From contig NW_026940631.1 of NCBI RefSeq assembly GCF_032062105.1, positions 558,001 to 622,000 on the forward strand: a stretch of 64,000 bases of DNA, written 5' to 3'. The DNA comes from Saccostrea cucullata. Its lineage: Eukaryota. Positions 5,241 through 64,000 of this stretch are shown here, in pieces; position 1 is the stretch's first letter; every line of letters starts with the position of its first letter. The notes beneath the pieces are model-generated. The model made no database searches. It was not told the origin of the DNA and was given only the letters and a program-made list of their open reading frames with translations. The position numbers and the translations under genes were made by a program.

Positions 5241-5531
5241 GTAAGTAAAAAGTCGGAATAGTTTCATAAACTGAAATTATTTTTATACATTGATGTTTTG
5301 TTTAATATTTTTTTTCAGGAAATTATTTTGTAATGTCATAAGAAAATTTTCTATATACTATTATTTTAAATAAGAATAAAGCCACAGATTGTTTTATTAT
5401 TAGGTCATAAAGTTGAATACGCACAAAAGTGCAAACTGAATACATTAGAATTGCTCATTTTATCACGTTTTAGTTTTTAGAAATATCACTAAGCCTTACA
5501 TAAACGTTTAATTGTACTTTTTCAGTCCGCC

Positions 5532-8500
5532 ATGACAATCCTAAAGGGCTGTTTGATTTTCATAGTAATGGGATTAACTCATGGAAACCAGAACCCAATA
5601 TTTAAGGCTAACGGGAATATCCTATGGAAAAGTGACGGTTTTCAGTTTGTAGAAACCACTTCTACAACAGTCGGTGGAACGGCTTCACGATTTTCTACTC
5701 CTGTTCCAGTAGTGAAGGAAAGCATATACTCCATAGCCCCGGAAGATTGGACACGGGTAGGAGACAGTGTGTCAGACTTGAAAAATGTTCATTTAGAATC
5801 CATTGATAACAAAATCCAGAATTTAACGATAAATGAGTCGAAAGCTCGTGCAGATAACAATAATGAAGCGTCTGACGTTAACACCGTATCTCAGACAGAT
5901 AGGGATTCTGTTGCAAGAAGTCTGGAACAACAAAATATAAATATAGTCCGGAATATTAAAAACAGCACAAATGTGATCATTGAAGGTGCCGATATTGTTC
6001 TACAAAAAGTTGATTCAGGCAGTGATATGCTTACAGGAGAAAATTCAACAAAATATTTTATACCTTCCACTACAAGTCCAACACGCAACAGTGATTTAGA
6101 AACCCCAACCCACAATTCAACAAAAACTACTGCTGAAAGCGGTGACAAGTTGAACAGGTTGCTTTCAAGTCCTGGAATAAACGATATCAGCACAACGACC
6201 GTCACATACATTCCTGAAGAGAAAGTGTCCGTTGTAACAGAGACTGTTGATACAACGAGCCCAAGTAAATCACCTTCTTCAGCAGGATCCATTTCTTTAG
6301 ATTCTTTTGTCAACATGCTTTTGCCAAATGAAGTAAAGGATCAAGTAAAAAATAGGGAAGGTTTAAGGAAAGAAGCATTAGAACCAATAAATCCAAGTCA
6401 AACAACACAAAAATCAACCCAGAAGCCAGCAACAGTAGAAGTACCCACATCAAGGGACTCCACAGCACAAGAATTATCATCAATGGACACAACAATTCAA
6501 ACTTCAGTAATTAAAGAATCTACAACACAGGTTCCAACTATACAAGATAAAACAAGACCAGAACAAAGTATTCAAGAGAAAATAGTAAACCAGCAAATGA
6601 TTAAAGATATTGATAAACAAAATCTACCAATTCAAGGGAAAATCCGAAAATTTGGAAACATTACAGTGCCCCATGATGTGATCCTTGAGGGCCCAAATGT
6701 TGGTTTGCAGGAAGTTGTCTCCGAAAATGAAACTATAGAGATACAAAAATATACCACCAAAAGTCCGCAGTCAGCTTTTTCGACAAGTCAAAAACTTACA
6801 ACTGAAGAACTAACCACTCTTGAACCAACAACTTCAAACGCAATCACAACTGAACCATTTACTTCAGAAGCAACAACCCAAGAGCCAAACACTCCTGAAT
6901 CTGCAAATCTAGAACCCACAACTCAAGTTCCAATTTCTAAAGTGCCGACAAGTCCAAAATCAATCACTGAAGAGTTTTTCACTCCAGAACCCACCAATCA
7001 AGTAAAAACAACTTCAGAACCAACTACATATGAACCAACTACTGTTGAGACTTCTGCACAACCAACTACTCTAAAACCTACAACAAGAGAACAAACCACA
7101 TCTGAGCCAACAACGTCAGAACCAACTTCTCCCGTATTAACAACTACAGATAAATTCATTAAGGATACCTTTACTCAGGATACAACTTCTTTTAGACCTA
7201 TCACCTCAGACCCAACATCATCTAAGCAAACTTCTCCTGAGCCAGCAACTCCAGAAAGAATCGCCCCTGAACAAACAACTTCAAAACTAACTTCTCTAGA
7301 ATCTGCAACTAAAATCACTGAAGAATTTATAACTAAAGACTCAACCACACCTGAACCCACAACTCCAGAACCAACCACACCAAAACCCACAACTCCAGAA
7401 CCAACCACAGCTGAACCAACCATTCCCAAACCAACCACTCCTGAACCCACAACTCCAGAACCAACCACACCTGAACCAACAACTCAAGAGCCAACCACAC
7501 CAGAACCTACAACTCCAGAACCAACCACACCAAAACCAACAACACCTGAACCTACAACTCAAGAACCAACTATACCTGAACCAACAACTCCCGAACCAAC
7601 CACACCTGAACCTACAACTCCAGAACTAACTACGCCTGAAACAACAACTCCAGAGCCAACCACACCAGAACCAACCACACCTGAACCCACAACTCCAGGA
7701 GCAACCACAGCTGAACCAACAACTCCAGAACCTACAACTCCAGAGCCAACCAATCCTGAACCAACAACTACAGCATCAACCACTCCAGAACCAACCACAC
7801 CTGAACCCACAACTCCAAAACCAACCACACCTGAACCCACAACTCCAGAACCAACCACACTTGAACTAACCACACCTGAACCAACAACTCCAGAAACAAC
7901 CACACCTGAACCCACAACTCCAAAACCAACAACACCTGAACCCATAACTCCAGAACCAACCACAGCAGAACCTACAACTATAGAACCAACCACACCTGAA
8001 CCAACCACTCTAGAACCTACAACTCAAGAACCAACCACTCCAGAACCAACCACAGCTGAACCTACAACTATAGAACCAACCACACCTGAACCCACCACTC
8101 CAGAACCAACCACACCTGAACCCACAACTCTCGAACAAACCACACCAGAACCAACTACTCCAGAACCAACCACTTCAAAACCAACCACACCTGCACCAAC
8201 AACTCCAGAACCTACAACTCCTGAACCAACCACACCTGAACCTACCAATCAAGAACCAACCACACCAGAACCTTCAATACAAGAACCAACCACACCTGAA
8301 CCAACAACACCAGAACCTACAACTCAAGAACCAACAACACCAGAACCTACAACTCCAGAACCAACCACACCTAAACCTACAACTCAAGAACCAACCACAC
8401 CAGAACCTACAACTCCAGAACCAACCACACTTGAACCAACAACACCAAAACCTACGACTCCAAAACCAACCACACCTGAAACCACAACATCAGAACCAAC

Positions 8501-10956
8501 CACTCCAGAACCAACCACATCTAAACCCACAACTCCAGAACCAACCACACTTGAACCAACCACACCAGAACCAACCACTCCAGAACCAACCACACCTAAA
8601 CCCACAACACCAGAACCAACCACTCCAGAACCAATCACATCTAAACCCACAACTCCAGAACCAACCACACCAGAACCAATCACATCTAAACCTACGACTC
8701 CAGAACCAACCACACCAAAACCCACGACTACAGAACCAACCACACCAGAACCAACTACACCAGAACCAACCACACCTAAACCCACAACCACACAACCAAC
8801 TGCACCTAAAGGCACGTCTACAGAACCAACCACATCAAAACCCACAACTCCAGAACCAACTACTCTGGCACCAACAACTCGTAGTTACATAACTGCTAAG
8901 CCAGCAACTCTGAAACGTGAAACTTTTGAACCAGTAACATCTGTAACAACAACTACTCCCCCACCTCCTCTTGAAAGTATGACTTTTAAACAATTATTAA
9001 TACTTTCATGCTATTTTTTCTCAGTTTTAAATTTTCATACATTTTATTTTTCCTTCTGTTATTGAAATGTGTTATCAAATTTTATTTACAGCTTTGTGTC
9101 AAAATAGCGTTTTTATTGATGGCATCGGATATAACACATATCCAGGACAATGTAACAAAGTTGTTCAATGTTACTTCAACTACGATCAAACAAAAGCAGT
9201 TCTAAGAGAATGTCCAGCTGGGTTATTTTGGCATCAAGATCACGCCATGTGTAAATCGCCAGAAAAAGTGCCGTGTTACGATGGTATGATTTTTTTCCGC
9301 TATATCAAATTGATTTTTAATTTTTTTTTTTTTTTTTTTAAAGAAAAACAACAACAGGAAAAGTTTTTGTAAAAATAATTCTTCTCTACATCATGGTAGC
9401 TGTATACAAGTTTACAATGAATTGTTGGTTCTCTCAATTTTCAGATCAATGTCTCAATATTGGTGTGAATGCCTATGCAAGATCTGGTGGATGTAGGTCC
9501 TATTATTCCTGTGAAGCGGGAATTTCTGTCCCAGCCTGCTGTGATAAGGGATTCCGCTTTGATGGTCAAGGCTGTGTTCCGGACAGCTCTTGCATGGATT
9601 CCTGTGAAACTCCAGACGACTTAAGACGACGAGTAAATCAACAAAGTAAGTATTAAAATTGAATTTATCAGAGCATTTATCATTAAGTAAGTATTAAAAT
9701 TGAATTTATCTGAACATTCCCATATTAACACATCTAAAGAAAAGCTTTTGAGTCTTTTCTCTCTAAATATAGTGTGTAGGTTCCTACCAGATAGTGGCAA
9801 CCCCTATGGATATCTTACTCTAGAGCACAGTGGTCTTCGATTTAGAGCATGTCCATACGGGACAGCGTTTAGTGCCAGTCAGTGTATCTGTACTTGGAAT
9901 CCAACGCAAACCAGATCATACCCACAGCGAGAAGGTATAAATTTATCAAGCTTACAGTCGCATTCATATTCCTTTACAGCCTTAACAGCTTTCTTCAACA
10001 AAATAATTATACAAACTTTATTTCAAAGAATTCTGCTCATTTAATTCCTTTTCTCTCTCTCTCTCTCTTAAACAGTTTGTAAACCTGACTTTAAGATGAA
10101 TTTCGATGGAAACTTGTTCAGGGAACTTTCTGGATCCAACATGGCTTTCTACGTAGAAAACGCAGTTATTCAAAATGGCGCAGCAAAGTTCAATGGAAAC
10201 GGAAAGATTACTTTGTGGGGTTTTATGAACAAAGAACTTGGAGATGAATTTGCTGTTAGAGTTAGGTTCAAGCCACTCCAGACAGAGGGAGGGTACGGGA
10301 TGCTAGTTTCTAACTGTGGATATGAAGGTCTACCAACAGTAGAAATCTCTATGCAGGATAAAAAAGCGAGACTGGTAGCTAAAAGTTTGCATTCCAATTC
10401 TCCATCCATCTTAGAATATCACATAGTCGTAAGTATTTATTATTACATCTAAAACGGTTTTGTTTTATTTCATTTCAATATATTAAGAAGGAAACCGAGT
10501 AGGAATGAACTAGAATGCAAAAATATATTTCACAAGTTTTTCTAAATTCTTTATTTAAATTATGCAAAGGAAAAGCCCACTGCACAAAATTATTTTATTT
10601 CAAGCCATATGAATGGAATGAAATATCATATCACTACGATGGCAATACGTTTACTGCTGAAGTAAATGGGTACAGCATCTCAGAGAAACTTACTGGAGGA
10701 ATAGAGACGAGCTCGAACCCGATGTTTATAGGGGGCTGCCCCAAACCCGGTTCTGGATTCAATGGTTTAGTAGATAATGTAAGTATATGGATATTTCTAA
10801 ATTCTCTATGTCTTTAACTTTTCTATGTCAAACAAAGCAAATTTCGAAATATTTTCTTAGCTTTTACTTATACAATAACAGCTTCTACAAAAGAATGATT
10901 TTTTTCAGGTTGAAATTTACAGCAATTGTGTTCCTTCAAATTTCCTACAAAACTAG
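5532..10956 (+). CDS. Secreted mucin-stalk protein with three chitin-binding type-2-like Cys modules and a C-terminal LamG/ConA-like domain (Pif/BMSP-like), about 1524 aa. Coding exons 5532-8976, 9092-9283, 9445-9645, 9773-9934, 10076-10428, 10605-10778, 10909-10956
   Basis: Kozak-like tccgccATG and a signal peptide (MTILKGCLIFIVMGLTHG). All introns are GT-AG and join in frame (4575 nt). Cys modules include CNKVVQC..RECPAGLFWHQDHAMC, CRSYYSC..ACCDKGFRFDGQGC and RACPYGTAFSASQCIC. LamG-like segment: CKPDFKMNFDG..AKFNG..WNEISYHYDG..MFIGG..FNGLVDNVEIY. AATAAA at 11188. Confidence 0.88.
7344..8870 (+). repeat. Coding 15-bp minisatellite encoding roughly 100 PTTPE/PTTPK pentapeptides
   Basis: Units such as ccaaccacacctgaa and cccacaactccagaa are visible directly and the frame is never broken. 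Confidence 0.97.
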
Positions 10957-17800: not shown

Positions 17801-20490
17801 TCAATCCTCCATGGCACCTGATCCCATCTCCAATGTTTTGGAGGTCTGTGTTTGCTCTACTCCTATTTTGTATTGTTTTATGGACTTTAGATCTGAATAC
17901 TGTTCGTTATCTCCATATGTTTCATTCAAAATCCTGGCATTATCCCTCTGGTAAGCTACAATTAAAGGAAGTGTGCTATTTCAACAGAGTCTGTTCAATG
18001 AGAGCGTGAATTTTACATTTCGCTTTTCGCTTATAACGCTTTGAAAGTTTGTGACGTAATTTGGTATTTTGAATGCTGTAGATAGCTTGCTACATTTAAG
18101 CAAAATAGATATTATATGGAATGTACATGTAAAAAAATAGCATATCCCAAACTTAGGCGTTGTCCTCCAAATGTACTCTTCTTCTTATTCGAATATCAAA
18201 AAAAGAAAGCACAATGATTATACAATTTGAAAAAAAATAGTTGTTTTTTTGCCCAAAATGTTCTCAGTGTTAAAATCGAAATTCCCAAATCACTTACAGG
18301 AATTATTTCAATGTATAAATGGGTTACTGAAGGGTTCAAGGAAGATGGGGGTTTTTTGGTAAAAAAAAACAAAACGACGTTTTAAACCTCCTTTTGGTCC
18401 CTTGGTCCCTAGCTAATCTACAGGACATAACTAAGTGTATTCTGAAACTTGAATGGCCTACATGTACTGCAAGAAATGTATGAGAAATTTAAGGAAACAT
18501 TTTTGTTAAAAAAAAAGAAAAACATTGTTTTGTGACCTCAAGGTGAGTATTTAAAAACCCAATTCAATCATCATAATATGAACGGACAACTGCCGAAAGC
18601 GTAAGATCAATTCAGAAAACCAGTTAGGTTTCGTAGGGAAAAAACAACACTGTTTAAACATTTATTTTTACTCAGGCTTGTCATCATGTTTGAAAATGAA
18701 AATTTAAATCTCTATTTATTTTTCGAAAGTTATATTATAATCATTAAAAGATATTAAACAAAACAGAAAAGTATTAAATTGATTATAAAAATATTATATA
18801 TCTTTTTTTTTTTGCTAAACCTTATTTTTTTCCTTTGTAGTATTTGGATCGCTTCATAATCTCCCCTGCCGCAGGACCGTGGATATCTATGGGTATGATA
18901 TACAGTGTCAAACCAACCACTCTATTTACATTGTAAGTCACGTGATAGAAGATGGATTCCAGAAGCTATCGCCACTTGACAGATTATTTGGATGTGATGT
19001 TAAGAATGCATTGGTATGTGGACAACATTACCCCATTAACTCAACAATCTCTGAGGACTCGGCCATCTTCAAGCGCGCAGTCAGCACCTGCAATGGAAAG
19101 AACATGTGTACGTTGAAAAAGAAGTATTTTGAAGACAGTGAGAATTTCTTTCGAAACGATTGTCCATCTCTTAAGAGTTATCCAAATGCGATGGTTCGTC
19201 AAAGTATTGAATATGAATGCATACAAGGTACGTTTAAACAATTTGTTGACAATATTTTTCTTTTAAATAAATAAATGAAAGAAAATATTGCATATGATGC
19301 TTGCAACTGAAGTATGTTTGCATCTGGATTAAAAAAAATTATGATCAAATCTAAAATTGATTCTCTTCAGAAAACGAGAGATCTGTCATCGATATGTGTA
19401 AATATCTAAATGTAAGTCGCAACGGAAACGTTTATATGAAGGCCAAGGGTCCAAATAAGATTTGCAGGTGTGAAATACAGGGGGTTGTCTCCGGATTGGT
19501 AATTCTGAGTTCCTACAAGACAATCATCACGACAAACCAGCGGTTCCGAAATCCTCCCGAAAGTAAGTAATTTTCTGTATAATAAAGTAGCTTAACTGCA
19601 CATATTGCATATTGAATAAGTTGAATTGCTGAAACTTTTTTTAAAACAGAGAAAGAAGCTGATATAGTATACGGACGTCATTTGTCGATAAGAACTGACC
19701 GTCTCTCCATTACTGTGAACTTGACATCTCTGGAAAGTATGATTTTTCTGAAAGTATTAATTGAAGGTATGTTGAGTACACTAATTTTTTTAAAAAAATC
19801 TTATAAGTTATGGCAATAATAGATTTAAGATATTGAAAAGAAATCAAAAATTAATAATAACGGCTGAAGGTGAGTTCGTATATCACTAGCTTTTATAGTA
19901 CATATATTTAAGTTATTTAATTTTTTTAAAGTATTCAATTTTTTCTTTACTTTACCTTGATGCAGAAAAAGTCGTACCTCTCGTCAGAGCAGAATCCATG
20001 GTCTTTATAACTGAGGCTCCGACTATCGACACAACCAAAATAAGTATAGAGGGAAACTACACCAAGACTGGATTTCTTAAATCACTGCTCTCTACAACTG
20101 GGTCAGCTGATTTGTCACATAATGTCCAAGTCAGTACTGACTTTGGAACTGACCAAGGTACTCGATAAACGTGACAGAAATGCAAGGAAAAGGTCAAAAT
20201 TATGTTCAGTAAATTATAAAGTCTGTGATATGCTTTGATAAGATGGACATGAAAGAATTTTAAATTAATTCATATTTACTTGAATGTTTTATAGGGCATT
20301 TAGAAGTGTTTAGGACAATTTACACTCTGTCCCTTCGTATTTTTTCATATTCTAGATAATCATGGGTGGTTGGTTACAGGTATTATTTTAGTTTTTCTCG
20401 TTGTTACACCTCTTTTCATCTGGAAATTGAAACCTCGAAAAAACAAGTAAGTATTGTTTTATTTGTACTATGAAAAACATATACAATCTC

Positions 20491-20542
<52 letters not shown>

Positions 20543-20856
20543 GGAAAGCTTAATAATGAATTGAAAAATTTGATAACCTAAAGTAATTTTCCCCCTTTCA
20601 TTTTGAGGATTAAGTCCACAGAAACTTCCGATAATGGAAAGATAGGGAAAATTTGACATCAGTGGAGAGCAGAGGAAAGGAAAAGATTCACTTGCAAGCA
20701 TCAACTGAAAAGCCACAAGAAGTTGTGTACACAAGCCTCATTACACAGACTGATCGTGTTACAAGTTATGATGAACCCGTTCTCTTTACATTGCCACCAT
20801 ATAATAAGTATATTGAAGTTCTTCCAGATTTGAACTGGACCACAGAGAAAATTTAA
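14880..20856 (+). CDS. Receptor A: type-I membrane protein (SUEL-like domain, second Cys domain, stalk, TM, ITIM-like tail). Exons 14880-14961, 18841-19227, 19371-19562, 19650-19766, 19966-20157, 20356-20446, about 20646-20856
   Basis: Signal peptide ..FTFLLLFSKMLQ|VFG with a TATA near 14850. 8-Cys exon ending QSIEYECIQ. IDMC..CRC exon. 117-nt exon 4 as in the paralogs. TM WLVTGIILVFLVVTPLFIW. Tail motifs VVYTSL, YDEP and YIEV. The last acceptor is uncertain: the stronger AGs at 20607-20621 lead to early stops. Confidence 0.72.
15575..17925 (+). mobile_element. Penelope-like 3' fragment split by the TIR element
   Basis: RDDFNFSIVN..IPSSPAYGVYIS remnant on the left and its continuation from 17510, including the gtgaccgatcggcaggggatgctc..ggcacctgatccc motif. 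Confidence 0.7.
15690..17509. mobile_element. 1.8-kb non-autonomous DNA transposon with TIRs and a 6-bp TSD, inserted into a Penelope-like fragment
   Basis: TIR tacgaaagcccagaaggctcattcgaga / tctcgaatgagccttctgggctttcgta. CATAAG at 15684-15689 and 17510-17515. Subterminal (TTCGAATC)-like repeats. Confidence 0.82.
20487..20540. repeat. (CT)n microsatellite
   Basis: Seen directly in the last intron of receptor A. Confidence 0.95.
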
Positions 20857-22548
20857 AAGTGAAAATTAATCAAATTTCAGTTCAAATGATTTTTTTTTTT
20901 GAAATTGTGAAATAAATGAAATAATATTCTATATCGATGCGAGGTTGCATGTGTTCTACCTCATTAAAGAAATGACATGAATTCGAAAACCCGATATTTT
21001 GTGACGCACAAAATCCTTTTCGAATGGAAGAAAAAGACTCAGTTACTATATACATGTATATCATGTTGATTAAACTTTCGTGGGAACAAAAGATCATGCC
21101 CTAAATCAACGCGAGGAATAGGTATACATGTATTTATTATATCAAATTTAACATACTGTATTATTGGATGAACCATTTGGAATAGCTATATATATGTACT
21201 ACCGGGGAAAAAAAGAGTGCACAATGCTGAAAGACTTCGATTGCTTAATTGTTATTATTGGATTTAAAAAAAAAAAACCTGGTATTCACATAAAACATAA
21301 TAAAAATATCGTAAGCATACGTTTTGCTGGTAAAAACTGCAAATAGCTCTTTAAATTCATACTCCTTAGAGATACAAGTGATTGGGTCTTCTGTGTTACG
21401 TGTAGATGTCACCTAAAACTGCCTTATACTTTTGATCAGGGGAAAATCAAAATAAATGCTATAGTTTATTTTCTATCTATTTGCAAAAACAGTTATAAAA
21501 ATCATCTCTTTAAAATTATAATTATATTTTTCTACTCTATAATTTCTTTTTTTATTTAATTCTAATATATTATCATTTTAAAAAAATTGCATTAAAAGAT
21601 CTAAATAATTCATTTCTGTATGGAGAATATTGGTCAAGCTGTATTGACTGACTATTTCAAATTCAACTAACAAAAATTAAACCAATCAGTTAACTCCCCT
21701 TATTTATGTTGCAATATACCATTATCATTTGCATATGGAATTAATGTTTCCCACTTAATTTGATACACAATAGTACGTTCTACATACAAACACTTTCTAA
21801 AACAAGGCAAGCTATTTACAAATAAGTTGATGATACAGAAATATCAACCATCTTGATTTAGCTCAATATTTCACAAAATCTATGGTCGATAAAAACACAT
21901 AGTCTTCTTCATGATGGATTGTTTCGGAGGTCCGTGTTTGCTCTGCTCTTATTTTGTATTGTTTTATGGATTTTGAGATTGAATACTGTTTGTTATCTCC
22001 ATATCCTTTCAATGATATTTAAGCATCAGAATGATTGATTACGATTAGCAATTAACCCCTTTCACTATTTTTTAAAACTGTTTCTTAACAAAAAAGCGGT
22101 GAAATAAAGGCCACAAAAGGTATAAATGATCATTTAAAAAGTATTTTGCGTCATATAACATTTTCCCACATCACTTTATTATCTTAAATTGAGTGATGCT
22201 TTATGACAAAGTTCGTGGAATCGTTCAACATCTGATATAGAAATGATCTACAATTTCCTCTTTTCAACAAGTTTAAATTATTTGAAAGTCAAGTGATGTC
22301 AAAGTAAGGTGCAAATATCAAGGAGTTATTCGGCAATTGTAGAGAGAACAGCTGGTACTTGAACGCGATCTTTTATTTCGGATTTAGACTTAATTTCCAC
22401 GCGTGGTTGGAACCTTTGAAATCTTCAAAGCTGACAAATTTGTATAGAGGTCGCATGTATAGTACCCCCGAAGCTGTTTCTATTTTAAAAAAGTCATTAG
22501 ACTTATTTTAGAGGTATTGAAGGGCGTTACATGTATTAGTGACTGACG

Positions 22549-25500
22549 ATGCTGCACACTTTGGAATTTATCATACTGAACTTTCTTTTGAATTTCAAAG
22601 GTACAGTATCATGATTTTTCAGCACTGTTTCCAATTGATCACATTGGATGTGGATAACCCAGCAAGGTTTCTCTTTTTCACTGTCATCTATCTGTATCTG
22701 CTTTCTAAATATTTATCAAATCTCATTCTATTAATATGTTTAAAAAACAGCTATCAGATTTTACAAAGTAGAAATAAATTATTTATTATTGTTGTATTCT
22801 ATTAGATGCCACACTTCTACTCCGTTTCACAAGACCAAGAAAATTATACTTGGAAAAAAGTTTCAAGTTTGCTTTTCATTTTGATTTAAATTACTGAATG
22901 GGTCATTTTTCTGAATGCTTTTATTCATTTTTTCAAAATTCATTCAAGATGAACATATTGATAAATTTTTTGTCGTTTGATTTTTGTATTTAAAGCTGAT
23001 TGTACCACGCACAGCTCCCCTTGTTTGGAAACACAGTACTGGAAAAAGTACGAAGTTCGATGTTCCGAGAATGAGACGATATATATAAGACAGCACAATA
23101 TTGGAGAAAGCTGTCAGGAGGAAGTTTTGGGATATGATGAAAAGAAAGTAAACTCTTGTAGTTACTCCTTACCGCTCAGTAAAACAATCACAGATTACCA
23201 GACACCATTTACAAAGACTGTAAATAAGTGCAACGGCAAAAGGGAGTGTGTCCTGTTCACGGATTACTTTGAAAAAATTGAATCAGAGAATGGCGCTTTA
23301 TGCAGAAACCCGAATACGTCAATATTTCAGCGAATAGAATATGAATGCATACCAGGTATTCCTAAACGACAATTTCTCATAACAATGATAATGTATAGCA
23401 AAAACCTAAAAATTTATCCTCTAAACTATTTTAATTTTTTTTTACAGATGTCTACGTAGTAGATAACTGTGTAAGAGAAGTGGACGTGGATAATCAATCT
23501 GAACTTCACGATATATATCTACGCTTTTCTGTGATGAATAGAAATCATTCTTGTCTTTTGATTGGCGAGCTATCAGGAATAGAAATTTTACATACCTACA
23601 GTTCTGTTTTGCGCCTACTTTACCAAAACCATCCTGTTTATGGTGAGGCTTCTTCAATTACAAAAGGGCTGATTTCGACTTCTACAGCAAACTTCAACTT
23701 AATAAATAACAACTTGAGAGATAAAACATGAATACTAGATTCTATACAGATAAGTCAAACTGAAATTTTCTATATCCGGATTCTTAAGATTGTAAAATAA
23801 AAATAAAACACAAACACACAATCACCTGTACACAATTGCATCTCAAAATTTATATTTACGCAACACTAAAATTCATTGAAAACATTTAATTTTTTTTTGC
23901 TTTTACAGAACACTTAGAGTCCAGTATTGGTTTGTATGGGGTGCAAATTTCTATACAGACAATTGGTCTTGTTCTCGAAATGCAAGGATTTGATTATAGT
24001 AGCATTACATAGATAATATATAAAAACTAATTGGTAAGTTGTTTTAATAGTTTATTACAACAATCCTTACATGGAAAAACGATTTCAGTGATTTTATATT
24101 TACATGAACATTGTTGAAGTCACCTTTGAAAAAAAAATACTTTTTCGGATATATCTAGTGAGAAAAATTTCAACCCGGCAATTTTTCAATTAGTAGAATC
24201 CTAAGTCATGATATATCTTTTAAAAATTAAGGAATTAATTGAATATAATCCATTGTAATTTTTATATTAATATGCGTATTTACAGAATAAAGGAAAAAAG
24301 GGGGTTTTTTTTTTGTACACTTTGTTGTGGAAAAAACCGGGTTTTTCTTTCGAGTTATACATGTAAGCGATAAATTTAATTTTTCGAAGAACATTTGGAA
24401 AGCAACGTTTTTCAACAAAGGATTATTTATTGTGTGCCTAACAAAAATTATTTTTTTAACTTTTGAATTTTGATATCTTTAAAAAGAAAAAGACTTTGGG
24501 ATATAAATTGACAAAAGTTTAAATAATTTATGGACAATTATTTTTCAAGAAGAAAAACGAATATATTTTTTAGCGATTAGAATCGGACCAAGCGGCTTTA
24601 AATGAAGCTTATTCAGTTACTAGTATATAAGGGCTGATTTCTCCTCCTACACCAAACATCAGCTCGATACATAACAACCCAAGAGATAATACATGAATAC
24701 TATGAATCTGTACAGATAAGCCAAACTGAAATTCCCTGTATCCTGAATACTTAAGATGGCAAAATACAAAAGAGCACCATCACCTGTACACAATTGCATC
24801 TCGAAATTATCTGATCATATATAAATTGTTAACTTTAAGAGTTCTTTTTTTTTTTGCTTTTACAGAACACTTAGAGCCCAGGATTGGTGTATTTTTAACA
24901 ATACAATATGAAGTTATATTTCGAAATGCAAGGGTTTGATTATAGTAGCTACGTACTTGTAAAACTTCTTGGTGAGTTTTAACTATTCTGACTAAGAAAG
25001 TTCTGTCGAATGGTTTGAAATTTTATATATTCCTTTCAAAGTACATGACATTAATAATTTTTTAAATATTTTATTTATATGCTAGTGAGAAAAATTTCAA
25101 GCGGCACATTACATGTCGGACCTTTTCATGAAAAAACTGAAACTGCCAAAGGTTCAGGTAAAGGTAGAGAAGTCGATTCTAGTACCCTAATGCTAAATTT
25201 AAAAAAAAAATGCTATTTGCATTTTTAACACCTGGTTTCTCTGTCATTTTCTTTTCCAGAAAATTTGGAAATTAACGTTTTTCACTGGATTCTCACTGTA
25301 TTTGCTGCCATAATAATTCTACTGGTATTATTTTTGATCTTCCAACGGAGGTAAACTATGATAAATTAATTAGATATTCAGTCATCGAGCAAGTAAAGTG
25401 CTACTATTTTAGTAATCAGTTGAAGAAGAGAAATTAATTTGTTTTCCCTTATTTTACATTTCGTGGGGTCAACACAATTACAGAACATATATGGGTTTTG

Positions 25501-30200: not shown

Positions 30201-33200
30201 CTCACAGAAATAACAATTCCTCCGAATTTTCCACACTTTTAGAAATGTTTTCGGTCTTACATTTTGAAAGCATCACTTTTTGACACTTAAATACATTTTC
30301 ACCTTAAATCTTAAACTACATATCACTTCTTATTGCTGAATATTATTCCAGGGTCCGTTATCAGTAAATTCCTTTAAATTATCCGAGATTCATCTGTTTC
30401 ATACTTTTCCGGCGTACTTCCCAAAACAACGTAATTAATTGACAGCCCATCTATATTTTTCGACACCGCTTTTATTGCAGATCCTGATTATATCATATGG
30501 AATGTTTTTAAAGCTGGATTCGCATAATTAACACCGCTAATCTTTTAATCTGTTTAAGCACTATATAAGTATTGTCCGAATGGAACTCCATAAGAATCCT
30601 ACACTTTTCCTCAACAAACCATCATCTTATAATAAGTAATGACAAATTTCCAACCTTTTATCAAAATTCTGTAGTTTTCTTCAGCTTTCAGGTCAATGGT
30701 ATTCAAAAAAAACACCTGAACCTCTCTAATTTACTTCGGATCTAAGAATACTCTTCGTCTGATTCCATGACCTTTCAGAACAATGATGAGGGTTGAAATG
30801 ACATCAGCACCATGTAGTTTCATGCTCATTAGTCTATGAATAAAAGGGGTGTTCTATTAGGGTATTGTGTTGTGTCACGGTTGGATATTTAAATGGGCTA
30901 CATCCTATTGTATTACAGCAAAGTTAGATATTTGGATGGGTAAATGTTTCTTTGGATCCCAAAGTAAGGAATTTTTTTAAAATAAGATAAATAACGAGAT
31001 GGTGTTGAATAGTTTAGAGAAAACATCCCCTCCTCGGACCTTCGGCCCTCGGAGAGAATGTTTTTTCTAAACTATTCAATACAATCTCGTTATTTATCCC
31101 TTACGTAAATAACAATTAAGTGTCACATTACTTATTTAACATTGATATAAGTTCATTGTTCGAGTTTTCTTTATTTCATATTCAAAGAGAAAATCTCATT
31201 TAAAATAAAAAGTCCTTTTTGTTATTTTAAAGAATATTTACAATCATGATTTTTCATAAGATTCTAACTGCATCTGTCACTTTTAATTTTACATATAACT
31301 TAGTTAATTTAAATTTCATTTTAAAATCAATTGTAAATAGTTTTATGATAAATAATGAGAAACTTTTTGTGAGACCCCCCCAAAAAAACCCCCCAACTGT
31401 AACCGTATGTAACATTTGATGAATAAATAGTGTATAAAGTGCAACAACTATATAAACGTATCAGTTGAAAGTCAGGATCAAACAATCTGTTGTTTTCTAC
31501 TGTCAACAATCTGTGTTTCAAATGAGAACTTTTTTCTTTATATCCAAAGGTTCGTTAACGAACACCCAGTGTAAGAGAACACATGACTGGAACGGTTACC
31601 AATTCCAATGCTCCAAAAATCATACGATTTATATCAAATACCATATCATAGAGGATGGATTTCACAAGTCATCATCCCCGATCTTTGGATGTCAAGAGAC
31701 AGATGCCCTTTATTGTGGTGTCAAACTTCCTATCAACCAAACACTTAGACAAAACAATTCAGCTTTTTCGTCAGCTGTAAGAGATTGCAATGGTAAAATT
31801 CAGTGCCATGTGAGTGCTCAATACTTTAAAGATGTAGAGGCAGGTCTTCGCAAATCATGCAGTCAATCACATCAATCGGATTTAAACAAAGCCAAATTTC
31901 GACAAAGCATTGATTACGAATGTATTCAAGGTAATTCTAAATAGGAAAAGAAATTTCCCAATTTCTTGACAGTTCTTCTACTTTAATTTTCAGTTAATTA
32001 ACAGCAAGTTTATTTTTTAGATTACCAAGTCATTGATATGTGCACAGATAGAAAATACAGCAGAAGTCCCCATGTATATTTACGGTTATCTGGTGACAGA
32101 GAAAACTGTTCGTGTGACATCATTGGTAATATTTCACCTGTTCATATTTTACAGACAAATATGGTTGAAATTTCCATCTACAATGAAAGTATGCCTTTGT
32201 ATGGTAAGATATATAATACGAGATACTTTTGATGGTTTTAAAATTTTCTTTCTTTATAAAAAGTATCCTTCTCTAAAAAGTAATTACAGATTTTGTTATA
32301 TATTTTTTATTTATCAACTCATATTAATATAATATTTTCATAAATATATTATTTTAATAGTGCAATTTACATAAATCAATATTCTATTTTTATTTCAATG
32401 CTTCAGAGCACAATCACCCTAGTGTAAGTCTCTATGGAGTGGAAGTTCAAGTGATTACTAAGAAGTTGCTCATTCGTACACAGGGAAAATCTGCATCAAG
32501 TTATATACTTATTAAAGTATTGGGTAATTATTTCATTCTTACATAGAATTATAAATAAATGACTGACGTAATACTTGTACTTCTTCTTCGTAATTCTCAT
32601 GCTTTAAAGGGAACCTGACAATTGATTGCGAGGAATTAAAATCGACGAGCACTGTTCAAGATAAGGATCCTGTGTCTACACGTTCAACCAGTGTAGTAAA
32701 ACATCAGGTTGGAGAACAAATTCAAACATATAATAATCAACACGTAAAACAACCAGTATAGATGTAATGGGGAAATCACCGAATGGTATCAGGCGAGCAT
32801 TTCAAGAACAGGAAACATCAACCGGAGAAGTTATTTCGATGATATCTGTAGAAAGGAAACCAACATTGAATTCACAAATTTGTGCGTACTATCTAAAAAT
32901 CAATTTCAGAGAGGTAAAATATGTATCAAAGAATATTGTGCGCCCTGATCGATAGATCGGGGCGTACATTGTTTTGTCCTGAAATTTTTCAATTTTGTTA
33001 AATCGTTTTGTCTCTCTGTTGTCTGTTTTTTAACCTTCGCCAAACTTTATATACAAAATGATTAATGACTGCATATTCAATATGCATACTCCACTAATTA
33101 AGTTCTTTCAAATGCCACCAAGATCATTGACTATGACAAAAGTGGTCTTGGCTATGACAATAATTATGTGCTAAAATAGCTTTCCGAACTTTCGCCATAA

Positions 33201-52900: not shown

Positions 52901-53534
52901 AAGCCATACACATTTTTTCCAAGTAACAAAACATGGACACGGCCATTACACATGTATTCATGACATTATGTGAGACCAGGGGTATCATTTAGTGAGCTCA
53001 TTGCTCACAGTTCCTCTAGTTCTTTTTTAACATTGTAAAACTTATTAGGCGTTGTCTTTTCATTCATAAATAAACGTGCATGCATTCATTTTATATGATA
53101 GCATTTTTAGTTGGTCATCTTATTCTGAATGAGAAAATATCACTCAATAAAATTCTTTTTATCGTATTCTAAAATTGTAAACATATACACGTGTTTTTTA
53201 CAGAAAGGACAGAGATCTTCTCTTGGCAATTCTTCACAAACTAGAAGAGAGTGATCAAAGCGTTCAGGAGGAGCAACACTCCAAGACGACGGAGACAAGC
53301 CACATTCAGAGTACAGAAAGTAAAAAGAACTACCAGGAAATCCCATTGCAGTTCTTGAATTGTCCAAAGACCAAGCATCTCAGTAACCCTGTATACGAAA
53401 GTTCAAGTCAGGAAAATGTTTCATCTGAAGAGCAACATGTCGAGCTTTCAATGGCTGGCTCCATGGATGTGCAGAGTGGCCGATTCCTTTTGGAGAGTGA
53501 CAATGGAATCTATGAATTGCAAAAAAGATTCTGA
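43937..53534 (+). CDS. Receptor E: ectodomain nearly identical to C, with an unrelated TM and an NPxY-containing tail; frameshift in the stalk exon as assembled. Exons 43937-43988, 49088-49468, 49559-49741, 49945-50061, 50474-50606, 50894-50968, 52583-52673, 53204-53534
   Basis: Signal MYHTIGIIVFILIVDIQG. TM LFSSLFLFLGGVVLLVIFFLLLSVI. Tail NYQEI, NPVY and GIYEL. The stalk aligns with D only after a 1-nt shift near 50500-50518. Confidence 0.78.
44840..45922 (+). mobile_element. Helentron-associated non-autonomous element (HINE/pearl-like) with an internal tandem satellite of about 165-bp units
   Basis: 5' ttttagctcacctgaatcgaagactcaagtgagc, a (GTC/GTT)n microsatellite, repeated catcctcaggtagtgtagattca..tcaaatcatgaccc units, and 3' caggtgagcgatgtggcccatggg. 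Confidence 0.8.
46213..46386. mobile_element. Tc1/mariner-type MITE
   Basis: TA-cagtaaaactc..gagttttattg-TA with internal ttcgttata repeats. Confidence 0.65.
46900..48300 (-). mobile_element. Penelope-like retroelement fragment (RT C-terminal part and 3' region), interrupted by a TRIM
   Basis: Peptides MGTNCAPLLADLF..FRYVDDVLSINN and KLYDKRDDF..IVNFPYLCSNIPSSPAYG..SQLIRYARAC. Assignment to the Penelope-like group is from recalled family motifs. Confidence 0.75.
47323..47729 (-). mobile_element. TRIM (non-autonomous mini LTR retrotransposon) with tRNA-derived LTRs, Helenus-like
   Basis: Two 141-bp direct repeats (47323-47463 and 47589-47729) bounded by TG..CA. 4-bp TSD TTCA. On the minus strand: PBS-like TGGCGCAAACGTTGGG, PPT AGAGGGGGAC, and tRNA-like A/B boxes in each LTR. 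Confidence 0.88.
50090..50423. mobile_element. Short TTAA-flanked TIR element in intron 4 of E
   Basis: ttaaggtcagat...atcttaccttaa; absent from the homologous intron of D. Confidence 0.55.
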
Positions 53535-61510: not shown

Positions 61511-64000
61511 TTACTTACTTACTTATCCTCTCCGTGCCCCGGAGGACGCATGAGGCCGTTCAACAACGAACGCCATTACGGCGCTCACTGGCAACAACTT
61601 GTCCCTCCTTCTAATTGTTCTAGCCCAGTTCTTCTCTTTCTTTCTCTCTCAACAGGGTGTTCTTTGGCCGTCCTCTTTGTCTCTTTCCCTCAGGGGCCCA
61701 TGTGAGAGCTGTTCTACCATGCGAGTTCTCTTCCCTTCGGAGGATAAGGCCTATCCATCTCCATCTTTTTCTTTTGATAGTGCTTGATAGAGGTATGGAT
61801 CTTGTTCTTTCATATAGTTGTTGGTTAGTTATCTTTTCAGGCCAGTGTATTTTAAGGATCCTCCTAAGGCATTTTTGGTGGAATGTATCAAGCTTTTCGT
61901 TATCTTTTTCTGTTGTTATCCATAGCTCAGCACAATACAGCGACACAGATAGAACGTTGGTGTTGAAGATCTTAAGTTTGGTCTTTGTGTTGTATTGTGC
62001 TGACTTCCATACCTTGGCAAGGGATGCAAAGGCGGTCATGGATAAGCCTAGCCTTCTCCCAATATCTGCCTCGGTTCCTCCGGTCTTGTCTATTGTGGCA
62101 CCCAGGTAGAGAAATGTTTCGACCTCTTCTATTTCTTTATCATTCAACCTGATGGCATCCTTCTTCTTCACATTTATTCTCATGCTTTTTGTTTTATCGA
62201 CGTTAATTTTTAGGCCTGTATATTCAGCATGTAATCTCCTGGTTTTCTCCTGCATGTCGCTGTGTTTGCTGGAAATAAGTGCAAGGTCGTCTGCATAATT
62301 CAGGTCTTCTAAAGTGGACATAAATTTCCAACGTATGCCTCTCTTCTTATTGTTGGTATTTCTCATTATCCAGTCTACCACAATGATGAACAAGAATCCA
62401 GACATAACACAACCTTGTCTCACTCCTGTCTGTACTTTGAACCAGTCTGTTGTTCTTCCATTCTCTATGACACAACTAGAACTTCCATCGAATACTTTCT
62501 TGATGATATCCACGTACACACACGGAATTTCATACTGCCTTAGTATGTCCCACAGTTTCTCTCTTATTATGCTGTCAAAGGCTTTTTTAAAATCTATGAA
62601 ACTTATGTACAGTGATGCTTGCCACTCTATAGACTGTTCTAAAATATTTCTCAGAATGTAAATCTGTTCTGATGTTCCTCTTCCTCTTCGATATGCAGCT
62701 TGCTCTGGTCTTAATCTGTCCTCTAGTCCATCTCTAATTCTGTCGATCACTATTCTGCAAAATACTTTAGATAGCACTGATAGTAGTGATATTCCTCTAT
62801 AGTTGTCACATATTGTCAGATCCCCTTTCTTACGTATTTTGACAATGAGCGATCTCTTCCAGTCTGTTGGTATTTCTTGCTCACTGATGATTCTGTTGAA
62901 TAAATTTGTGAGCTCTGGTGTTGAATATGATACGCTCTCATTTAGTAGCTATGTATTGATGCTATCTATGCCAGGACTCTTTCCATTCTTCTTTTTTTAT
63001 TATTGCCTTTTTAACCTCCTCCTCTGTAACTGGTGTTGTGTCAATTTCTTCAATTTCATTCTCTTGGGTGGTGCATCCTTTGGGTAAATCTGTTGTTTCT
63101 GTTGGGACATTAAGGACCTCTGCAAAATATGCTCTTTCCATTTCTCCAATATTTTTCCATCCTCAATGATTAGTTCACCATTCTTGGACCTTATGCCACT
63201 TGTCCTGCTCCTTTTTCTCCCACAAAGCTGCTTTGACGGTTTGTATTTGCTGCATTCTCTGCTTGGTTAGCTACATCTTCCAGATTTTTCCTTTTATCAG
63301 CTCTTGCTCTTCTTTTCACTTGTCTTTGGTCTTATATTCTTCTGTCTTAATTTCCTTCATTCTCTCCGAATTTGATCTTCCTATTTCTTCCTTTAGTTTT
63401 CTCCTTTCATCTATGGCTTTGTAAGTTTCTGCAGTTAGCCAGTCTTTGTTCTTCCTTTTCTTCTGGCCCAGGATCTTTTTTCTGTTTCATTATATGCTTC
63501 TTTTACAAGAGTCCATTTTTTATTAATTGTGTTTTCGTCATCGACCAGTTGCTGAATCCTATTCCGTAGTTCAAGTTGGAATCCTTTGCTTATCTTTGGA
63601 TCTTTCAGCTTGTTGACATCATACATCTACCTGTTGCTTTCCTTTGGCTTTAAGTTTCTGCAGAGCTTCATCTTTACTTTAGCCAGTACTAGATGGTGAT
63701 CTGAATTGGCATCTGCACCTCGCATAACTCTTTCATCAAATACAGACTTCTTGTATCTGCCGTTCACCATTACATGGTCATTTGGTTCCTATCTCTACCA
63801 TTAGGTGACTCCCATGTAAGCTTGTGTATGTCGAGGTGCTTAAAGAGGGTTCCACAGATGATTAAGTTATTAAGAGCACACATTTCTGCTAACCTCATGC
63901 CGTTTTCATTCACAATCCCAATGCCCTCTTGTCCCATTGTCCCATGACTCTTTTCCATCCTTCATTCGACTTTCCCACTTTTGCATTTGCATCACCCATT
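61511..64000 (-). mobile_element. Degraded non-LTR retrotransposon (RTE-like LINE) with APE endonuclease remnant and reverse transcriptase; runs off the window edge
   Basis: RT motifs FIDFKKAFDS, GVRQGC and YADD. C-terminus ALTWAPEGKRQRGRP. Endonuclease remnant NENGMRL..TWESPNG. (TAAG)n 3' tail at 61511-61525. Several frameshifts. Confidence 0.9.

Follow-up and report, generated by a model that had tools for sequence, protein, structure and literature searches.

The stretch of DNA analyzed here, the window, comprises 64,000 nucleotides (nt) of the Saccostrea cucullata assembly GCF_032062105.1 (contig NW_026940631.1, positions 558,001 to 622,000), with a GC content of ~32% and no runs of N. 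It carries a cluster of five paralogous receptor genes, A to E, all on the + strand, in which exon 2 starts at 18849 (A), 23013 (B), 31550 (C), 38926 (D) and 49088 (E), and exon 1 of C, D and E, overlooked in the first reading, lies 0.7–5 kb upstream. RefSeq lists A as LOC134255806 and B as LOC134255807 and merges C and D in LOC134255778, all as 'uncharacterized'; exon 2 of E, used as a query, returned a 442-residue protein with 100% identity, RefSeq XP_062594335 (LOC134255808, Saccostrea cucullata). The genes encode type I receptors with a signal exon, an exon 2 for a domain resembling the SUEL/rhamnose-binding lectins (RBL), exons 3–4 and the start of exon 5 for a CUB-like domain, a Ser/Thr-rich stalk, a transmembrane (TM) exon and a tail encoded by a single exon. 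A genome search in S. cucullata recovered the five copies of the window and, on a different contig, a single C-like copy that is degenerate; no haplotig copies were found. All named relatives are from oysters, i.e., S. echinata, Ostrea edulis, Magallana gigas, M. angulata and Crassostrea virginica, matches in unnamed assemblies having been left out of this statement. Full-length searches used database proteins; the window genes were searched exon by exon, and their exons were joined only for identities, trees and the ratio of non-synonymous to synonymous substitution rates (dN/dS).

Genes C and E lie 17.5 kb apart and share a tract with 93.9% nucleotide identity over 1138 bp. In the core of this tract the last 60 nt of intron 1 match at 60/60 positions, exons 2, 3 and 4 are 96.1%, 96.7% and 97.4% identical, and introns 2 and 3 are 93.3% and 92.1% identical, compared with 69–76% for the same introns against D. 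Beyond the tract, identity is 75% in exon 5 and at background (42–48%) in the TM and tail exons. Across exons 2–4 the two proteins differ at 14/226 residues (dN 0.028, dS 0.070); dS is 0.06–0.09 for the tract and 0.31–0.57 for the intervening gene D. Informative sites within the tract group C with E at 164 positions, C with D at 22 and D with E at 20. The first-pass annotation had described exons 2–4 and their introns as nearly identical in C and E, with 14 differences over about 227 residues, followed by a TM region and tail of E that do not align with those of C, and each of these statements was borne out. It had also proposed gene conversion between C and E, to be doubted if exon trees were congruent along the gene; the trees proved incongruent. 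The direction of conversion cannot be polarized, because D, as described below, derives from both C and E.

The two kinds of tail are unrelated as far as profiles can detect. Comparison of C-type with E-type tails gave an hhalign probability of 0.15% and cross-hmmsearch E-values of at least 0.38, and homology of the two tail types was rejected on this basis. In both types the intron that closes the TM exon has the same position and phase, and neither type has a conserved charged TM residue. C-type tails are characterized by IEIH-x-A-x-C-x-C, YxPL and a terminal YLDV-like motif, E-type tails by a juxtamembrane LLL-x-IL helix, YQEI, NxxY and, in 8/12, a terminal YELQ. The NPVY, YQEI and YEL motifs previously noted in E were all located in its last exon. 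The ITIM consensus (an inhibitory, tyrosine-based motif of immunoreceptors) was found in 7/10 C-type and 0/12 E-type tails; all 12 E-type tails have NxxY, 7/12 have NPxY and 11/12 have YxxI upstream (counts over related sequences, and so not independent). This YxxI mostly follows acidic residues, one position off the consensus of the hemITAM, a form of the activating motif (ITAM), given in PMC12582321. A conserved ITAM in C-type tails was ruled out, the spacing occurring only in three Saccostrea genes. The tail tyrosine motifs are conserved across oyster genera. One Magallana E-type group (P0036, P0038, P0054) has two to three tandem N(P/T)GY copies and has lost the terminal YELQ.

AlphaFold models of the ectodomain were confident, with a predicted local distance difference test (pLDDT) of 88 and 85. 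The fold of exon 2, taken from the E copy, matched the latrophilin lectin, CSL3 and SUL-I (Foldseek probability 0.99–1.00, Z 5.7–6.1), and RBL-domain structures led the top Foldseek rows and the top eight VIA-align rows, the latter with modest Z scores of 5.3–6.3 (the next being 4.4). Residues 137–231 aligned with the CUB domains of C1s, Kremen, TSG-6 and spermadhesin at Z 8.4–8.7 and a root-mean-square deviation of 2.3–2.7. Foldseek also paired the two-domain model with bacterial toxin domains; these matches were disregarded as generic beta-sandwich similarity (template-modelling score <0.2). At the level of Pfam, the best score for SUEL (PF02140) was 11.8 bits against a gathering cut-off of 31.4 (best E 0.32), the CUB-like domain had no match (exon 3 scanned), and neither EGF nor EMI was matched in the exons scanned. 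The YGR, DPC and KYL motifs are the sugar-binding motifs of SUEL/rhamnose-binding lectins. All three were absent in 27 aligned SUEL-like domains, which suggests that the ligand is probably a protein, not rhamnose.

The pairing of one ectodomain with two tails recurs across oysters. Both tail types were found in five species belonging to three genus groups, and the ectodomains of their C/E pairs are 94% identical in S. cucullata, 100% in S. echinata, 98–100% in O. edulis and 94% in both M. gigas and C. virginica. The C. virginica pair was compared over exons 2–3 from protein models only; the other pairs were confirmed as separate genes on DNA, a step needed since RefSeq isoforms can be chimeric. 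Orthologous ectodomains are 77–79% identical within Saccostrea and 41–54% between genera. For the TM region and tail, identity across species is 29–79% for the same type and 20–32% between types. The ectodomain tree groups by species, with eight changes of tail type, not fewer than with shuffled labels. Forcing E-type ectodomains into one clade was rejected in the approximately unbiased (AU) test (p-AU 4e-77), as was forcing the E ectodomains of S. cucullata and S. echinata together (p-AU 5e-10). In the E-type tail tree the two Saccostrea E genes join O. edulis E, as orthologues should.

In S. echinata, C is followed by E at a distance of 24 kb, and the exon-1 regions best match the positional orthologue (E 73%, C 66%); the exon-1 region of S. 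cucullata C is 66% identical to that of S. echinata C and 54–56% to those of E or D. The gene downstream of E is common to S. cucullata, S. echinata and O. edulis. Since two chromosome-scale assemblies hold positional orthologues in an identical order and with the same flanking sequence, C and E are not mis-joined haplotypes, the other ground on which conversion was to be doubted.

At the DNA level, C and E are 98–100% identical over ~1.3 kb in S. echinata, and exon 2 is 98–100% identical within the pairs of O. edulis and M. gigas. Identity peaks on the ectodomain exons and decays in the stalk in each of the four species whose DNA was compared. Exons 4 and 5 of O. edulis are matched islands amid kilobase introns that do not align, and exon 4 of E departs from that of C1 at four positions, despite a flanking intron that is for the most part unalignable. 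A minisatellite derived from the exon 4 donor region lies 3' of exon 4 in both E and C1 of this species (L038:17480-17640). M. gigas has two head-to-head E/C pairs (OY970747.1, ~14.886–14.899 and ~14.927–14.937 Mb), in which exon 2 is 100% identical within pairs and 87–88% identical between them. Full-length E-type proteins are present among the models of five other species and in a Logan contig.

Taken together, these results strongly support recurrent gene conversion, and not mis-assembly, as the origin of the C/E ectodomain match, with recurrence in S. echinata, O. edulis, M. gigas and C. virginica. The two tail types predate the split of Ostrea/Saccostrea from Crassostrea/Magallana, the divergence of Crassostrea and Ostrea being placed ~180 million years (My) ago (PMC12021676). 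The match itself reflects replacement in place, not fresh duplication. As judged from the sequences, ectopic conversion of the exons of the folded ectodomain recurs, and the promoter, exon 1 (in Saccostrea), stalk, TM region and tail are gene-specific.

Gene D provides a record of exchange between the two genes. In the region of exon 1, 45 informative sites group D with E, against 8 and 9 for the other groupings; in the TM exon, 43 group C with D, against 2 and 4; and in the tract D falls outside C+E. The repeat unit from exon 2 of C to exon 2 of D recurs from exon 2 of D to exon 2 of E. This pattern is what one would expect an unequal crossover of C with E, placed within the ectodomain, to leave behind, and it indicates that D is a hybrid with an E-like 5' end and a C-type TM region and tail. 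No third copy was seen in the S. echinata loci, in which a 1.4-kb gap was unread. After D arose, C and E were matched again while D was skipped.

In this assembly both C and E are damaged in exon 5. Exon 5 of C measures 272 nt to a donor homologous to that of D, compared with 285 nt in D, and its frame breaks relative to D near 32748, beside a short run of A, leading to a stop at 32759–32761; the break may be an assembly indel. Exon 5 of E, with a stop at 50581–50583, lacks 14 nt compared with D and S. echinata E, and it lacks 17 nt compared with an in-frame spliced contig of run X4, which is labelled as another organism than runs X1 and X2; the contigs of X1 and X2 did not reach the critical bases. 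The net loss of 14–17 nt rules out a homopolymer slip in E. RefSeq bypasses the E frameshift with an acceptor that drops the last CUB strand and a Cys conserved through C- and E-type genes. The E allele of this haplotype may thus be weakened or null and the C allele secreted or null, and D may serve as the intact C-type receptor. Full-length models of the orthologous genes are present in S. echinata, O. edulis and M. gigas. In the RefSeq locus that merges C and D (27290–42949), isoforms join C exons 1–2 or 1–4 to downstream D exons, which is either a modelling workaround for the C frameshift or true read-through splicing that gives a C ectodomain with a D tail.

Spliced contigs of four runs contain the GT-AG joints of E between exons 2 and 3, exon 5 and stalk, stalk and TM, and TM and tail. 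One contig joins exons 2-3-4, and the exon 4–5 joint was not among the contigs listed; as assembled contigs, they speak to the presence of E transcripts, not to level or tissue. The stalk of E has one exon more than was recognized in the first reading, and its tail exon has a single match in the genome. The coordinates of both genes are collected in the table.

Table. Exons and other features of genes C and E, with gene D, in window coordinates
Feature	Position	Strand	Basis or remark
C exon 1, signal peptide	27290..27341	+	XP_062594287 residues 1-18 map there
Converted tract in C, from late intron 1 into early intron 4	31408..32544	+	93.9% to 48948-50082
C exon 2, SUEL/RBL-like domain	31550..31930	+	fold shown on E copy
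C exon 3, CUB-like domain, first half	32021..32203	+	
C exon 4, CUB-like domain, second half	32407..32523	+	
C exon 5, last CUB strand and stalk, out of frame	32610..32881	+	length compared with D
C TM exon	33481..33574	+	90% to D TM exon
C tail exon, C-type (YTPL, YTEL, YLDV)	35422..35674	+	
Gene D, frame intact (exon 1 at 38192)	38192..42949	+	RefSeq XP_062594286; informative sites
E exon 1, signal peptide	43937..43988	+	XP_062594335 residues 1-19
Converted tract in E	48948..50082	+	alignment to C
E exon 2, SUEL/RBL-like domain	49088..49468	+	AlphaFold2 (AF2) pLDDT 84.6; Foldseek probability 1.00 to latrophilin lectin and CSL3; spliced to exon 3 in four runs
E exon 3, CUB-like	49559..49741	+	fold and spliced contigs
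E exon 4, CUB-like	49945..50061	+	fold and spliced contigs
Dispersed repeat in E intron 4, just beyond 3' end of tract	50149..50410	.	~40 genomic matches, 67-74%
E exon 5 (133 nt), frame broken	50474..50606	+	RefSeq takes in-frame acceptor 50520
E second stalk exon	50894..50980	+	GT-AG on both sides in contigs; XP_062594335
E TM exon, without charged residue	52583..52673	+	spliced contigs
E tail exon, E-type	53204..53534	+	orthologous tails in other oysters; spliced to TM exon in four runs
E tail motifs YQEI, NPVY and YEL	53331-53342, 53385-53396 and 53511-53519	+	last exon

Outside the C/E pair, gene A (18849–20857) is a distant paralogue, 47% identical in exon 2 and not converted, with a tail of a third type that matches neither the C nor the E tail profile. 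Gene B (22997–25351) appears broken, with a stop in exon 4 and a TM exon near 25261–25351; it holds a second, frameshifted copy of exons 3–4 (23644–24003 versus 24603–24949) and showed no match to the C-like tail exon carried by B-like genes of S. echinata and O. edulis. The degenerate C copy (L011, G000:C20898:35661-39004) has many stops and retains the upstream intron-1 repeat of C. More C-type-like tail exons (34–36%) lie at L031, L032 and L033, on contigs C2747 and C12834 of G000, where the searches made found no ectodomain. Elsewhere in the window, a large gene at 5493–10800 combines an exon of 1190 codons, made up of pentapeptide repeats rich in Pro and Thr, with subsequent Cys-rich exons that by eye are chitin-binding- and laminin-G-like; a short element at 47322–47731 lies between 144-bp direct repeats that are 92% identical; and an open reading frame for a LINE-type reverse transcriptase occupies 61623–63266 on the minus strand.

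We judge it somewhat probable that selection keeps the pairs matched, such that C and E would retain a shared ligand while delivering different tyrosine outputs. Neighboring C-type and E-type genes keep swapping ectodomain exons by ectopic conversion, and the ectodomains would be held alike by the need for both receptors to recognize one and the same ligand, which is probably a protein. The YxxL/YxxV sites of the C-type tail, often ITIM-like, would damp signaling via an SH2 phosphatase, and the YxxI and NxxY of the E-type tail would bring in an SH2 kinase together with a PTB adaptor, leading to activation or uptake. As there is no conserved charged TM residue for an adaptor, each receptor would signal through its own tail. 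The same homology between C and E also produced the unequal crossover that led to D in S. cucullata. In support of this reading stand the close ectodomain match within pairs, the separate persistence of the two tails, the conserved tyrosine motifs, the splicing of E through TM and tail, and the matching of C and E past D, with vertebrate pairs as a precedent (PMC5112662, PMC5701461). A stricter form of this proposal, with strictly opposite immune polarity between an inhibitory C-type and an activating or uptake E-type receptor that share a ligand, are built on a non-Ig SUEL-like/CUB-like scaffold, arose independently in oysters and were held matched over ~180 My by recurrent conversion, we offer tentatively, as possible rather than probable.

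Several observations weigh against a shared ligand with two outputs. A comparison of S. cucullata with S. echinata gave a dN/dS of 0.17–0.27 for the ectodomain, not above that of the tails (0.22–0.41), and at the level of whole exons these two Saccostrea species showed no diversifying selection in their ectodomains, in contrast to the selection for diversification reported for the paired CEACAMs of Xenopus (PMC5112662). The ectodomains are under purifying selection, unlike vertebrate pathogen decoys. Unmatched members exist, i.e., the E4 and C3 groups of M. gigas and genes A and B. The polarity of the motifs is loose and no more than a hint of opposite signaling: the tyrosine under the ITIM match is not the same in Magallana as in Saccostrea, C lacks an ITIM, the Saccostrea C and D tails also fit ITAM spacing, the YQEI of E is not a canonical hemITAM, E has neither an ITAM nor a charged TM residue, and the motif counts are not independent. 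In addition, C and E are both frameshifted in stalk exon 5 here, which the first-pass annotation did not see.

Neutral concerted evolution, in which adjacent paralogues would convert for as long as they are similar and the tails escaped long ago, would give matching without function, and we regard it as unlikely. Purifying selection would here hold the exons of the ectodomain at a similarity that leaves them trapped in conversion, a view with which the low dN/dS, the introns carried along within the tract and the broken alleles tolerated in this assembly agree. The pairs are physical neighbors, head-to-head in M. gigas, and same-type copies can also be near-identical, as in O. edulis C1 and C2, a recent duplication with 96% nucleotide identity over 14 kb. 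Proximity, however, does not readily account for D, which sits between C and E, began as their hybrid and yet escaped; nor for the end of homogenization within the stalk in all four species, for the isolated O. edulis exons matched across unalignable introns, or for the retention of both tail types over ~180 My (PMC12021676). The escape of D, a single event, is the best hint that the matching is more than proximity.

C and E might instead be obligate partners, which we consider improbable, either as a heterodimer or in homophilic adhesion or self-recognition, with matched ectodomains and complementary docking tails. SUEL-like and CUB folds mediate protein contacts, the latrophilin lectin with teneurin or TOL-1 being the top structural matches, and purifying selection fits an endogenous ligand; heterodimer partners, however, need not be identical, and neither O. 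edulis nor S. cucullata has C-type and E-type copies in a 1:1 ratio. The head-to-head pairs, ~4 kb apart, could share a promoter, and the FF/FcoR receptors of Botryllus are encoded and expressed as pairs (PMC12582321). That the pair is an artefact, with C and E mis-joined haplotypes or the E tail taken from another gene, is scarcely credible, since the fragmented assembly (23,869 contigs, 1.17 Gb), the chimeric C-to-D isoforms of RefSeq and the lack of a bridge over E exon 4–5 among the contigs listed are set against a cluster layout found again in S. echinata (C before E, 5' flanks that match, an identical gene downstream) and, for gene order and the downstream gene, in O. edulis. Full-length E-type proteins elsewhere, spliced contigs running from E exon 5 through the stalk and TM exons to the tail, and the 6% difference between C and E, whose flanks are unrelated, speak against it as well.

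In the literature we found no paper on the oyster receptor family and none naming the six oyster locus identifiers searched; as far as searched, the C/E family is undescribed. Conversion-matched pairs were found only for vertebrates, none for oysters, molluscs or other invertebrates, in a search of incomplete coverage. If the stricter proposal is correct, the oyster genes would be a protostome case of the pair logic of Siglecs and CEACAMs, evolved independently. They offer a natural experiment in farmed species, with two defined tails, one ectodomain, five genomes and an escaped hybrid, D, as control. The locus allows tests of activating versus inhibitory tyrosine signaling in molluscs, and of selection versus proximity behind long-term concerted evolution.

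Among known receptors, the SUEL/RBL membrane proteins (latrophilin lectin, EVA-1C, CSL3, SUL-I) share the fold of the N-terminal domain, from which the oyster domain differs in scoring below the Pfam threshold, in its greater length with helical inserts, in lacking YGR, DPC and KYL, and in being followed by a CUB-like domain. CED-1, Draper and MEGF10 (PMC8092387) are likewise type I receptors with NPxY-type and Yxx-hydrophobic tail sites, but E has no EMI or EGF/NIM repeats and no ITAM, the Pro of its NPxY is not fixed, and its last Tyr lies in YELQ, with no YxxL downstream. The SUEL-like plus CUB-like fold without EMI/EGF rules out membership in the CED-1/Draper family, and the earlier link of E to these receptors and to endocytosis is weak, as the ectodomain differs, the YEL is not a YxxL (Y+3 is Q) and the Pro occurs in 7/12 tails. 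The FF/FcoR system of Botryllus (PMC12582321) also consists of clustered invertebrate receptors with ITIM/hemITAM-type tails, in which intergenic recombination mixes ectodomains and tails; there, however, Ig and Sushi ectodomains diversify and tails are shared, whereas in oysters the ectodomain is homogenized and the tails stay apart.

The closest parallels are the vertebrate pairs, i.e., SIGLEC11/SIGLEC16 and the CEACAM pairs of Xenopus and mammals (PMC5701461, PMC5112662). SIGLEC11 and SIGLEC16 lie head-to-head, 9 kb apart, with converted N-terminal exons and a null allele, SIGLEC16P, that has a 4-bp deletion (PMC5701461). The genomic hallmarks of vertebrate paired receptors, alike ectodomains on clustered genes and conversion limited to ectodomain exons, were found in the oyster cluster. 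As in the vertebrate pairs, the genes are neighbors, some of them head-to-head, with different tails; conversion is confined to ectodomain exons and recurs in separate lineages; and alleles of one partner are broken. Unlike them, the oyster receptors are molluscan, with a non-Ig ectodomain of SUEL-like and CUB-like domains that shows no sign of diversifying selection, and both partners have long, unrelated tyrosine tails and no charged TM residue.

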